Position numbers and translations under genes: made by a program. The notes under the pieces are model-generated. The model saw only the letters and a program-made list of their open reading frames with translations. It was not told where the DNA came from and did not search any database. This document shows positions 1,860 to 8,100 of a DNA stretch of 64,000 nt, piece after piece. The stretch spans positions 2,764,689 through 2,828,688 of the forward strand of contig JAUPSS010000007.1 in NCBI GenBank assembly GCA_040285825.1. The letters are read 5' to 3'. Origin of the DNA: Eukaryota sp. TZLM1-RC. Its lineage: Eukaryota > Protista > Metamonada: BaSk clade. The stretch's first letter is position 1; every line of letters starts with the position of its first letter.

Positions 1860-2321
1860 TTATTTCCTAAAACCGAACCCCAGTGAAATAAATCGAGATC
1901 GACAAGACAAATCCATAGAAAAAAGTGATTTATTGTACAGTAATATATTGTAATATGTACAGTAATATTGTACAGTAATACAAGAAACAATGTTAGAGAA
2001 GAAGGGTAACTGGAAATTCTTTCTACCAGTAGCATGAGGAGGAAAATATCGGGAGAGAACACCAGGTGTTGGAGATGAGAATAAAGAAACAGAAGGTGCA
2101 ACAGAGCCAATAAGGTTGATTCGTTTTGTGCGAGACCAGAGAATTGAGTTTCCTTTAGATATGTAGCGAATTCTGTGAGATGGTACAGATAAGGCAAGAA
2201 AATCGTGAAGAGGGAGGAAGAATACACCGCCAAATCTATCCTCAAAACCAACAAAGAAACGTTCTTTAGACAAAGAAGTATCGTGGACTAATCTGTTGAT
2301 GATGCTGAGAGCGTCTTTCAT
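1860..2321 (-). CDS. MJ1316/DUF504 (RNA cyclic-phosphate end recognition, LENG9-type) domain protein
   Basis: IINRLVHD...FFVGFEDRFGG...VPSHRIRYI...ILWSRTKRINLI matches the MJ1316 signature (R..wD, vGy.DRF.G, iP.HRi.y, vWdR..r.dl). The C-terminal tail is low complexity and uncertain. Confidence 0.8.
   Translation of the reverse strand: MKDALSIINRLVHDTSLSKERFFVGFEDRFGGVFFLPLHDFLALSVPSHRIRYISKGNSILWSRTKRINLIGSVAPSVSLFSSPTPGVLSRYFPPHATGRKNFQLPFFSNIVSCITVQYYCTYYNILLYNKSLFSMDLSCRSRFISLGFGFRK
1931..1980. repeat. short degenerate tandem repeat (TATTGTACAGTAATA, about 3 copies)
   Basis: Units seen at 1931-1945, 1956-1967 and 1966-1980, inside the 3' part of the MJ1316 ORF. Confidence 0.7.
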
Positions 2322-2528
2322 GAGTTACATAGAGTTGAAATTCCAGAAACTTTTACAAAGGATACCTAGTTTATGAACCTAGGTTATGAAGTGAGGGGAA
2401 AGTGTGGGAATAGTGAAAACCTCCCAAAACCAAGTTGAGGGTTAAAAACCTCCCAGAACAGGCAACCAGAAGTCGAAAATGGGGTGACAAGTGTAAAATT
2501 TGATAGATGAGCTCTTTATTCTCACTAC

Positions 2529-4484
2529 ATGTCAGACACCCACTCTGTGTTACGTGTATTCACTCGGTCTTGTGCACTTAACTCACTGCTGACCCCTGCA
2601 GCGGTGCAACAAATTCGGACTGACCTTCCTGTGGTCACCGAGATTTGTCATGAAGCTTCTCTATTGCTTCAATCTTTTCTTCTAAATTTTCCATTGGCAT
2701 CTAGAGCTTTAGTGGAACAGGATGTATGGTATCTGTTTATGACCGTCATCACCACTGGTTCTTTTCCTAAGCCTTCCACATCTAAAGGCCAACGCCAATT
2801 ACTCCATATCTTTTACAATGGATTTCTTCCTGAATGCCCACAAGACAGGTCTCTTGTTGCTGTGTGGGAAAATTCTTTAGTGCCTTACAGAAATTCATTC
2901 AATCTTTTCCTCAATGATTGGCTGCAGTCCCAGAACTGTAATTTTATCAATAGAAAAGGGCTTTCTCCTTATCTTGCTTGTCGGGCTCGTCAATTGGCCT
3001 CCAACGTTAAGACAAGTTTACCTAAAATTTGTCAATCCTGGACAAAAAACTTTATTCGTGCTTATTGTAGAGCCCTGAATAAAACAAATGTCTTTGCAAA
3101 TAATATTCTTTCACTTTTGCCAGATGAACCACTAGCCCAACCCGAGGAAGTAGTAGTTGATTCTGTTCTTGAATACCTCATCAATTTCAATTTGAATAAT
3201 TCAAGAGAAAGATTCTTCTTATTAAATGCATGTAAGTTTATCTTGAATCTCTTTCAAAGATTTCCTACCACTGCCTCCCTACTGTCCTCACATGATAAAA
3301 TCACTTTTTCATCAAAGGAAATTAGTGAGCTTTTTCTCTTCAATCTTAAAATTTCACAATACTTACTCACTTTCTTTTCTCATATGCATTGCTGGAAGAA
3401 ATTTAGAATAATACCTTTAGCTTCTCATAAAGGTTCTAAATTTATTGAGGTACCTTCACAAATTTTCCACTCTGTGAAAAAATTTCCAATTATTGAAGGA
3501 TCATCTTCCAAAACAAAGTTTATCAAAAATACATGTCTGAAACGAATATTCAAACAATGTCCTTACCAAAAATTCAATATCAACAGAAAAAGTTTGAAAA
3601 ATAGATTTAACAAAATTTTATTGAAAACTAATGGTAATGAACTGCTTTTGACCTTTGAAGGTAAAAATAATGACTCAGAAAACACAGATGAGCTGGATGA
3701 ACCACCGAAAAAGAAAAAGAAGATCAAAAATGAAATGAAAAGTGACCCTAATGCCAACAAAACCAGAGAAACACAGTTGAAGGGTACTAAAAAATGCCCC
3801 GTCGAAGACGTAGACATCCAGTCGAAATTTTACCTGAAAGCCCCCTTATCGGCGTTGATCTTGGCCAATCAAGATTATGTGGTTACTTCTTAAATGATAA
3901 TCAATGTGGAGTTATCCCTTGTCCAACTGGCAGAAGATACATGACAAAACCTTCACCCAGTAAACACTCTCCCAACCAATATTCTGTTCAAAATTTCAAC
4001 CAATATTTGAACCATTGGAATTTGGTCAGGAGGAAAGTGTATTTGGAAAGTAATCGCCAGAAATGGAAAATAATTAAATTTGATAACCGCAGACGAAAAG
4101 AGAGACGGTTCAGAGAGAGTCTCAACAAATTTCAAAGGCTGGCTGGACATCCTGAAAAACTCTATCTTGCTGTGGGTTCTGCTAATTTCCCTTCTCATTG
4201 CCGAAAAGTCAATCGATATGGATCAGCAAGGGCTTTCAGAAAATGGTTGTGTTATCAAAAGGACGTGAAGCACTTGTCAACCAGTGAATTTAATACAAGC
4301 AAAATGTCAAGTTGTTGCATGGCCGAGAATATTCAAGCAGGCTCATGGCAGATGCGTATTTGTACTGAGTGTCAAATAGTATATGACAGAGATATTTCCG
4401 CTGCAAAAAAATATTCAAATTAAGAAGAAAGCGGAATTGTGGCCGGAAAGATACATTTGCCCAGATGCTCTGTTGAGAAGATGA
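2529..4484 (+). CDS. Fanzor (eukaryotic TnpB-like RNA-guided endonuclease), Fanzor1-type, ~651 aa after correcting two homopolymer indels
   Basis: RuvC-I IGVDLG (D 3857-3859), AVGSANF, rearranged RuvC-II TSEFNTSK (E 4286-4288), Zn finger SSCC...CTEC, RuvC-III YDRDISAA (D 4391-4393). Adding one A to A6 at 3789-3794 joins ORFs 2529..3893 and 3794..4423. Removing one A from A7 at 4405-4411 restores AAKNI and extends the frame to TGA 4482-4484. NLS-like PPKKKKKIK near 3701-3728. Confidence 0.88.
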
Positions 4485-4640
4485 ATGGGGAACCTGAGCA
4501 TACAGAAACAAAAACTTTTGAGACCGATCTACAAATGCCCTAGTAGCATTTGGTAGATCCACTTAGATACATCAAGTCGCGAGGCTTTGTTCTGTGAAAG
4601 CAGTAGGTGTATTTAAGTGAGGTAGCCCATTGATGAAGAT
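4485..4640 (+). ncRNA. putative Fanzor omegaRNA (scaffold ~4526-4620 plus downstream guide)
   Basis: Hairpin 4526-4538/4546-4559. A 14-bp stem 4560-4573/4606-4619 (2 G-U pairs) encloses AAGTC-GCGA-GGCTT (4574-4587) and CTGT-GAAA-GCAG (4592-4603) GNRA hairpins. Lies immediately 3' of the Fanzor ORF. Ends are inferred. Confidence 0.7.
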
Positions 4641-5008
4641 CATGATTGTCTTTGTCAAATGATGCTACATGTCTCTTACAACCTGTGAGTAGACATTGAG
4701 AAAGTTGAAAACAGGAGTGAATTTCACAGGGGAATGCATGATAAGTGAAATTCACAGTAGTATCAATATTGTCTGTTAATCATCAATAAAATGTTTAAAT
4801 TCTGTACAATTTGGAATAATTGTAGCCACCAGCAGTATTATGTTCATTGCTTTAAACGTTCGAGTCCAAAGCTTCCACAAAATCCCTCGTGGTAAAAAAT
4901 GTCACACATGACAAATAATCACACAATGTCCAACCCAATGGCTCTTGTCAAGATGCTTGTCATCATGTTTCACTCTTGATTTGTTCAATAACAACATTTC
5001 CTATAGAC

Positions 5009-6399: not shown

Positions 6400-8100
6400 A
6401 CAACTAAAGCTCCACATCCTCGAAACCTCATCTCCTGCATCGAAACAGCTGATTACTAAAGATTCAGAAAATTTACCAAAAGAAGAAAATGAATTAGAAA
6501 TTAAATCACCATTCCTTTATGTATTTAGTCCTTTCCTTTACAATTACATTGAAATCTTTAATGAGTGCAAAAACAGCCTTACTTAAAGAACCAAGCAAAG
6601 GAAAAACAAAGGGACATAAATTTCATTGAACATGAGAAGACCTACAGAGGCTCTATAATAATGCGTACTATCAATATTGGTGTCTTCAAGATTTAATTGA
6701 GATAAAAATGGTTCAAAGACTCAATCTAATGATGTGATTCCCACATGACATAACTTTGGTTCCTGACATTATTATGTACTTTACTTAAGAATGTACCAAA
6801 ATGTTGACAGTTCAATAGATGAGTAAACAAAAGAGATTTACCACGTATTTTCAAAATGATTAAGCAAATTACTTGGCCACAAAAACGAAGACAACACATA
6901 TTCAAAAGCCATTAATTGATTTTTTGGAAAAGTCCATAAATAGAATAAATATGGGTAACTCAAGCAGCAACAGAACTATCACGAATGCCTTTTAAAAAAT
7001 ATCAAAAGCAGTATTGTTAGTTTTGGAATTTGTTGAACAAAAACAGATTTTTTGTCCCTCCCTTTTTGCTGTTTTAGAGAAAATAGATGATTTTGTAATG
7101 CCAATTCCACCTTATTTAGTAGAACAAAATAAATGGCTTCGAATCATAGATTTGTTAACTTCTAACATAATAGAAAAGAATTTGAACCGAAGTTTGCTAA
7201 TTTATCCGCAAAAATTGAGTCATATCAAAAAGGAGTAGATTATAATTTGTGCGTAAACTTTCCTGAATAACACAGTTTTGAAATAAAAAATTTCGTATGT
7301 TTTGCAATAGCACATTCGGCAGTGAAACTTAAATCTATATCAAAACTGTTCTGCTTAACTGGGAATAAATTTCACCCAAGAATTACGAACACCCAAAAAA
7401 CCGAACACGCAGGAAACTTAAATTATCTTGTTGGTTATTATTAATGAATGGAATTTCTGCACCACTGATTATCAAAGCTTGTGCGCACTCTACCAATCTA
7501 TAGACAATTAGATGGGTGTAAGTTGGTCCAATTTCTCTATATTTGTTGGAAATACCTTCAGCAACTTTACAAATGCTTTTAAAGGAACCAATAATGGAAA
7601 AATCATCCCTGTAAGCAACAATATGTAGTTCAGGAAAAGTTTTTCTGGGTCGAATAGGTATGGTGAATAGCCACAAAAATACAAAGGGCCAGGAGCTTCC
7701 GCCAGCAGCCTAAAAAACGAAGAGAATCAGAGAAATAGTTCACAAAAGGATTTCGACACCATCAATATACTATTACATTGCCAATGATTTAACATTCCCT
7801 TTTTTTAAACTAATTTTAAAAACATTCCCAATGAGGAGAAATTCCAACAGTATCAACAAAGAACCATTTTTTTATAAAAATTTGAAGCTTCAGCAGCAAC
7901 TTTATTCAAGACATCAAGAGGACCAATCAGTGAAATATCATCCACATATCCCACAGTTTTGAGCATAGGATAAAATTTACTTTGATTGAATTATGAATTG
8001 CTAAACAGAACAGAAGTGAGCCAAAGGTATCACCTTGCTTAGTTCCAGATGAAGAAATGTGGAATAATGATAAATTGTTTCCGATGACCTTACCAGAAAT
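6400..8100 (-). mobile_element. highly decayed non-LTR retrotransposon reverse transcriptase/RLE remnants
   Basis: The minus strand gives KQGDTFGSLLFC (~8005-8042), VGYVDDISLIGP (~7920-7955) and a second AYRDDFSIIG (~7590-7620), with many stops. The tail at ~6405-6470 recurs at ~17160-17230. Confidence 0.7.

Follow-up and report, generated by a model that had tools for sequence, protein, structure and literature searches.

To our knowledge, Fanzors are the sole RNA-guided DNA nucleases of eukaryotes, and a usable Fanzor requires its cognate scaffold together with the junction at which that scaffold gives way to the guide. In the 64-kb stretch of DNA analyzed here (the window), which comes from Eukaryota sp. 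TZLM1-RC, that is Skoliomonas litria, a Fanzor-type gene is followed on the same strand by DNA whose transcript would fold into stable hairpins. The locus thus raises the question of whether this RNA is an omegaRNA scaffold, and of where its guide would begin. An earlier note on the same DNA had recognized a structured omegaRNA-like element 3′ of the gene and on its strand, a proposal that our analysis supports, and had drawn the junction between scaffold and guide at a position that we come to revise. The window was compared by BLAST and alignments with twelve loci (L001-L012), with Skoliomonas sp. GEM-RC1 as the second species. A literature search returned no paper mentioning both Skoliomonas and Fanzor.

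SpuFz1 belongs to the Spu-1 element of the fungus Spizellomyces punctatus (Saito et al., 2023, PMC10432273), and its omegaRNA extends from the stop codon of the gene to the 3′ inverted repeat, followed by 14-15 variable nt that act as the guide (PMC10432273). The known Fz1 omegaRNAs measure 75, 90, and 150 nt, and the class is characterized by a first stem-loop, SL1, whose seven base pairs contact RuvC and TNB, whereas the regions beyond SL1 have been argued to be unconstrained (PMC11423790). The longest one solved, the GtFz1 omegaRNA of Guillardia theta, has 150 nt and four stem-loops (PMC11423790). The features of the Skoliomonas locus to be set beside these RNAs are the following.

2529-4484 (+): Fanzor1-like (TnpB-superfamily) nuclease gene, assigned from its ORFs, domain, motifs, and paralogs
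4485-4516 (+): linker of 32 nt after the stop codon, unconserved, 47% identity between species
4517-4759 (+): conserved structured block of ~243 nt, candidate omegaRNA scaffold, 76 predicted pairs in 8 helices
4520-4524 with 4671-4675 (+): H1, predicted closing helix in the consensus fold, GAGAC with GUCUC
4526-4559 (+): H2, 13-pair bulged hairpin, 4526-4538 with 4546-4559, bulged G at 4552
4560-4619 (+): H3-H5, 14-pair stem (4560-4573 with 4606-4619) with a GCGA and a GAAA hairpin
4622-4668 (+): H6, 19-pair hairpin, 99% of cells paired in 8 copies
4682-4715 (+): H7, 5-pair hairpin with a 24-nt loop, pairs invariant
4717-4755 (+): H8, terminal 11-pair hairpin, formed by the right inverted repeat and its internal inverted copy (4717-4727)
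4747-4759 (+): element's right end, made up of the right inverted repeat GAAATTCACA (4747-4756) and a conserved GTA (4757-4759)
4760-4779 (+): predicted guide segment, flank-derived, its length taken from the 14-15 nt of SpuFz1

The gene next to the block is interrupted in the window copy, where it is spread over three frames with two homopolymer indels as the breaks; its ORFs at 2529-3893 and 3794-4423 do not share a frame. At the A-run near 3790-3795 the window is one A short (A6, compared to A7 in L002), and the GEM-RC1 protein keeps its frame intact across this site. At the A-run 4404-4410 the window is one A long (A7, compared to A6 in L001 and L002), and the uncorrected ORF stops at 4421-4423; with A6 the frame continues to a TGA at 4482-4484, and L001 and L002 indeed read through to the equivalent of 4484. 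The structured RNA had been described as lying directly behind the Fanzor stop codon, which holds for the stop at 4482-4484, but only after the extra A at 4404-4410 has been removed. The assemblies are Nanopore-based with Illumina correction, and the two A-run indels may be either assembly errors or real decay. Given these two frameshifts, and given that no left inverted repeat was found upstream in the window, the window copy has probably either lost its activity or been mis-assembled. Its RNA module remains intact, all 76 pairs being unbroken.

As to the identity of the protein, the second ORF carries a TNB zinc ribbon (PF07282) at 24.4 bits, just under the cut-off of 26.3, as well as the motifs GVDLGQ for RuvC-I and DRDISAAK for RuvC-III. 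Two aspartates of the D-E-D triad are visible in this frameshifted copy, in the RuvC-I codon 3857-3859 and in the RuvC-III codon 4391-4393, the latter within DRDISAAK. A profile of the family matches Cas12m (E 1e-5), TnpB-like chains, and SpuFz1 (8gkh, E 0.018) over 160 positions, and when the protein sequences were searched directly against solved structures, only marginal TNB matches came up. The AF2 model of the intact GEM-RC1 relative P0036 (648 aa) is poor, with a mean pLDDT of 43.6, and in a Foldseek search with this model all of the four best matches are SpuFz1 (E 5e-6), with Cas12f, Fanzor2, and TnpB ranked behind them, an order that is indicative only. Weak as these scores are, they suggest with moderate confidence that the gene encodes a RuvC fold carrying a TNB zinc-ribbon insertion and is Fanzor1-like.

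A search with the N-terminal ORF found 15 relatives in TZLM1-RC and one cluster in GEM-RC1. The window is 97.8% identical to L001 over 1979-4759 (BLAST), and it matches L002 over 2348-4759, L007 over 2486-4759, and the GEM-RC1 loci up to 4759. Beside the window, the block is found in five more S. litria copies and in two GEM-RC1 copies, and five copies are complete. Within the 64-kb window itself, neither a repeat search nor the covariance model found a second copy of the block.

Several of these loci have neighbors or irregularities of their own. A gene with an MJ1316 domain, which is associated with the recognition of RNA cyclic-phosphate ends, stands head-to-head with the Fanzor gene at 1860-2321 (-) of the window and at 3371-3793 (-) of L001; its first 114 residues are 100% identical between the two, and similarity then ends at window position 1979. 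This gene is absent from L002, from L009, and from the GEM-RC1 element, and it could be cargo of the element, or else a host gene that was copied along in a partial segmental duplication. In L006, an NYN-domain RNase gene (3736-4629, -) lies head-to-head with a 3′-truncated copy of the Fanzor family of the window. L009 (5569-5663) and L010 (5595-5631) are decayed copies that are cut inside H2, at the equivalents of window positions 4555 and 4550, and in L009 a gene with a DNA_pol_B_exo1 domain begins ~50 nt past the cut-off.

The block begins about 30-33 nt after the frame-corrected stop, and this spacing is the same in GEM-RC1, where L012 has its stop at 6947 and the start of its block at 6979. 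Folding of 4485-4640 on the + strand gave a minimum free energy of -49.8 kcal/mol, which 200 dinucleotide shuffles never matched (z = -4.37), compared to -38.1 kcal/mol (z = -2.30) on the - strand. This fold reproduces exactly the 13-bp bulged hairpin of the earlier note (4526-4538/4546-4559), as well as its 14-bp stem closing a junction with GCGA and GAAA hairpins. Likewise, single-sequence folds of the whole block reach z = -5.0 in the window and -6.8 in GEM-RC1, and no shuffle folded as well. A consensus fold was built from 4515-4759 across five copies, and its Alifold energy amounts to -72.6 kcal/mol on the + strand versus -48.9 on the - strand. The claim that the structure works on the + strand only is also borne out by its G-U pairs, 6-13 in number, which would be A-C mismatches on the - strand. 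The covariance model made from this fold (R1) recovers 8 copies at 198-305 bits and has no other match in the window or the loci, and across these 8 copies 97.8% of cells are standard pairs, compared to 36-42% after a shift of the partners by 1-3 columns. Searching Rfam at gathering thresholds gave no match in the window, and a permissive search of 3800-5000 yielded nothing but snoRNA and miRNA matches at chance level (E > 3).

Comparison of the two species indicates what this structure has kept. DNA identity between them is 81% in the block, compared to 62% in the CDS and 47% in the linker, while the flank is at the level of unrelated sequence. Between the window and GEM-RC1, substitutions hit 23 of the 152 paired columns versus 23 of the 74 unpaired ones, and all 52 indel columns are unpaired, falling in the H2 loop, the H3 junction, the H7 loop, and the H8 loop. 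Furthermore, 15 of the 17 changed pairs stay canonical, five through compensatory changes and ten through wobble-compatible single changes. When the same substitutions were re-dealt in simulation, 8.7 pairs were broken on average, and the two broken pairs that are observed were never reached in 20,000 runs. The same pairs are obtained from alignment A6, which was fitted to the covariance model, and from the MAFFT alignment A3. This covariation compares essentially two lineages: with 93-100% similarity among the six S. litria copies, all five compensatory pairs trace back to a single species split. Across the two lineages compared, the RNA secondary structure is conserved and + strand-specific, its helices being kept by compensatory and wobble changes that fit the + strand only.

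The evidence is distributed unevenly over the helices. H2 shows three compensatory double changes and three further wobble changes in GEM-RC1, together with a 9-nt insertion confined to its loop, and it has seven pairs below the bulge (4526-4532 with 4553-4559), which may or may not correspond to Fanzor1 SL1. H3 has one compensatory change (C-G to G-C) and three wobble changes, and an 18-nt insertion at its junction is a duplicated hairpin (window versus GEM-RC1). Thus the two stems singled out in the earlier note are kept in other copies and are the helices with the most compensatory changes. Inside the 14-pair stem, a 5-pair hairpin carries the loop GCGA (4579-4582) and a 4-pair hairpin the loop GAAA (4596-4599), and both loops stay GNRA, GAAA being replaced by GUAA in GEM-RC1 and GCGA by GCAA in L007. 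In H6 five pairs vary, by wobble changes only. H8 has one compensatory change (C-G to U-A) and a loop that is fully diverged between the species, and after it the block ends with the tail AGUA. In H1 four of the five pairs never vary and the remaining one shows a single-side change from G-C to G-U, giving this helix no compensatory support. The H7 loop has only 4 nt in GEM-RC1, the 20-nt deletion staying within the loop. This same 20-nt stretch, specific for S. litria, forms an alternative local hairpin (4669-4696) that competes with H1 and H7 in single-sequence folds.

Where, then, does the scaffold end? Its hairpins, which are real, stable, and covarying, led the earlier note to a scaffold of only ~4526-4620 and a guide from 4621 (GGTAGCCCATTGATGAAGAT). 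A guide must differ according to the insertion site. However, the 20-mer 4621-4640 is found exactly in L001, L002, L007, and L008, and in 18 of 20 positions in the other species, GEM-RC1. Being identical at unrelated genomic sites, it cannot be the guide. Moreover, this stretch is the 5′ arm of the conserved 19-pair hairpin H6, in which it pairs with 4647-4668. The similarity goes on for 139 bases further right, so that the hairpins described form only the 5′ third of the block. Aligning the copies to find where conservation drops, the check proposed in that note, places the drop after 4759 and not near 4620. We therefore regard a short scaffold with its guide at 4621 as very improbable, and following that boundary would lead to a non-functional guide design.

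In all complete copies of both species, similarity is lost at one and the same base, window position 4759, after ...TTCACAGTA; the sequence at this point reads ...GAAATTCACAGTA (...CACAGTA), with 4759 as its last base, and the sequence past it is unrelated in every copy. This common end implies a predicted scaffold of ~240 nt and a guide that would start at 4760. The 20-mer from 4760 is unique in the window. The end of the block is also the end of the element. The GEM-RC1 copies L003 and L012 have 3,356 bp in common (a 3.36-kb element, 97.5%), ending at the equivalent of 4759. This shared stretch starts, at 2880 in L003 and 3795 in L012, with TGTGAATTTC, the reverse complement of the right end, and hence the element has short terminal inverted repeats. 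The conserved GTA (4757-4759) may be part of the element or of the target. The sequences to the left of the two GEM-RC1 copies, ..CATTG and ..GATAC, yield no consensus TAM, and no target-site duplication can be derived from these two copies.

Four matches to TGTGAATTTC in L007 were considered as a left end and rejected, since they belong to an unrelated 1.41-kb tandem repeat. Four units of this repeat (99% identical) occupy 1-5636 of L007 directly upstream of the 5′-truncated Fanzor copy, and three of the four have a called ORF of 141-173 aa. As for the right end, in L011 (6848-7071) the arms of the terminal hairpin have recombined and the loop is deleted, collapsing the hairpin, and 5 nt separate the right end of this copy from the ATG of a same-strand gene of 664 aa, the sole case of docking at a start codon seen in this family. 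From the right end in the window, the next ATG is 250 nt away.

Outside the two species, the covariance model found no homologous RNA in a third genome (GCA_040285805.1) beside the 41-45% identical Fanzor relatives L004 and L005, whose 3′ regions appear unrelated to the block, and metagenome scans gave no match to a conserved 28-nt RNA pattern nor to the protein patterns. These relatives (L004 1923-5980 and L005 2185-5149) lie directly behind XPG_N/XPG_I (FEN1-like nuclease) genes, an arrangement common to the two loci, which share 64-73% DNA identity. In L004 the XPG gene call ends in the conserved N-terminal Fanzor motif (..EKDVWYLFM..), and thus XPG and Fanzor look like one fusion frame, interrupted either by a stop codon or by the way the genes were called.

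The block lies on the strand of the nuclease gene, just 3′ of its stop, and ends at the right inverted repeat, an arrangement that could also be read in other ways. The block might be a cis-acting part of the transposon end or an element in the 3′ UTR of the Fanzor mRNA rather than a guide RNA, for example subterminal DNA bound by a transposase, a right-end hairpin in the DNA, or a stability or export element of the RNA. Indeed, the right inverted repeat and its internal inverted copy both lie within the block and together make H8, neither H1 nor H7 shows a compensatory change, and the guide-RNA role is itself deduced from sequence. However, wobble-only and compensatory changes together with the 6-13 G-U pairs point to a + strand RNA and not to duplex DNA, no counterpart of the hairpin is present at the left end of the GEM-RC1 element, and the block occupies exactly the position of the omegaRNA in SpuFz1. 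For a 3′ UTR element in particular, there would be no reason to stop at the last base of the element. We therefore consider a cis-acting role unlikely. Another source of conservation could be a small ORF on the - strand (4540-4755, 71 codons, GTG start), since the window and L012 each have a - strand frame without a stop for ~70 codons, or the structure could be a chance product of AT-rich DNA. The 20-nt deletion in GEM-RC1 would shift such a frame and the region left open is not the same one in the two species, while substitutions that follow base-pairing and the failure of any shuffle to fold as well argue against coding and chance alike, leaving both highly improbable.

The omegaRNA reading has its own difficulties. 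H1 and H7 are weakly supported, and S. litria has the competing hairpin at 4669-4696; the block is far longer than the known Fz1 omegaRNAs (75-150 nt, PMC11423790); the assignment of the gene to Fanzor comes from weak sequence scores and a poor model (pLDDT 43.6); and the window offers no left end, and no TAM is derivable. Still, the pairing-preserving changes are strand-specific, the GEM-RC1 deletion would disrupt an antisense frame, and no matching hairpin stands at the left end of the GEM-RC1 element, and because of these observations a cis element, an antisense ORF, and chance are all less likely than an omegaRNA scaffold. We thus conclude that 4517-4759 (+) is probably the omegaRNA scaffold of a Fanzor1-like Skoliomonas element. 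By analogy with SpuFz1 and TnpB, the RNA would be part of the Fanzor transcript or processed from it, and it would read past 4759, so that its last 15-20 nt, from 4760 onward, would be derived from the flank and act as the guide. The protein would then bind the scaffold and cut TAM-adjacent DNA matching the guide, and the target of this cleavage would be the same site without the element.

The anatomy is the same as in SpuFz1, which is why we read 4517-4759 as scaffold and 4760 onward as guide. In both cases a conserved non-coding block follows the gene on the same strand without overlapping it and runs through the 3′ inverted repeat, the element is bounded by short inverted repeats, and variable flank stands at the position of the guide (a predicted position here); SpuFz1 is moreover the top structural match of the Skoliomonas protein, albeit with a poor model. 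The differences lie in the size, ~243 nt and 8 helices compared to 75 nt and two stem-loops, with no detectable sequence similarity, and in the inverted repeats, which have 10-15 nt here and 30 nt in SpuFz1. Furthermore, the Skoliomonas RNA is a prediction from sequence; poly-A RNA-seq is on record for these strains. With GtFz1 the candidate shares a multi-helix Fanzor1 scaffold. However, the final 17 codons of the GtFz1 gene lie within its RNA, whereas here a 30-nt unconserved linker separates stop and block, and the Skoliomonas block is constrained between species over its whole length, unlike what has been argued for the regions beyond SL1 (PMC11423790). The omegaRNA (reRNA) of ISDra2 TnpB from the IS200/IS605 family likewise combines a scaffold derived from the right end with a flank-derived 3′ guide, as predicted here, and serves a nuclease of the same RuvC-TNB superfamily. 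Unlike the Skoliomonas block, it overlaps the 3′ end of tnpB, and the ISDra2 element has subterminal hairpins for a Y1 transposase in place of inverted repeats.

A further idea, which we hold as tentative and rather doubtful, is that function requires all 243 nt of the RNA and that constraint across species extends over its full length, in contrast to the known Fz1 omegaRNAs, in which SL1 and the guide junction alone matter; the 155-nt 5′ domain, where H1 closes the junction from which H2, H3-H5, and H6 branch, would then be an extra module. Such a module might serve self-processing, nuclear retention, or the recruitment of a factor that binds RNA ends and is encoded by the host or the element, e.g., the MJ1316 protein found head-to-head in two copies. 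If this were true, the RNA would be the largest and most elaborate eukaryotic omegaRNA known.

The Skoliomonas RNA would belong to a known kind, the Fanzor omegaRNA, and what is new is this member of it, notable for its size. A candidate scaffold and a predicted guide start are now placed for a Fanzor1-like lineage of a metamonad, and the sister species GEM-RC1 has an intact protein (P0036), making the pair of protein and scaffold directly testable. The putative scaffold is unusually long and conserved from end to end, contrary to the published view that the Fz1 scaffold is mostly dispensable.
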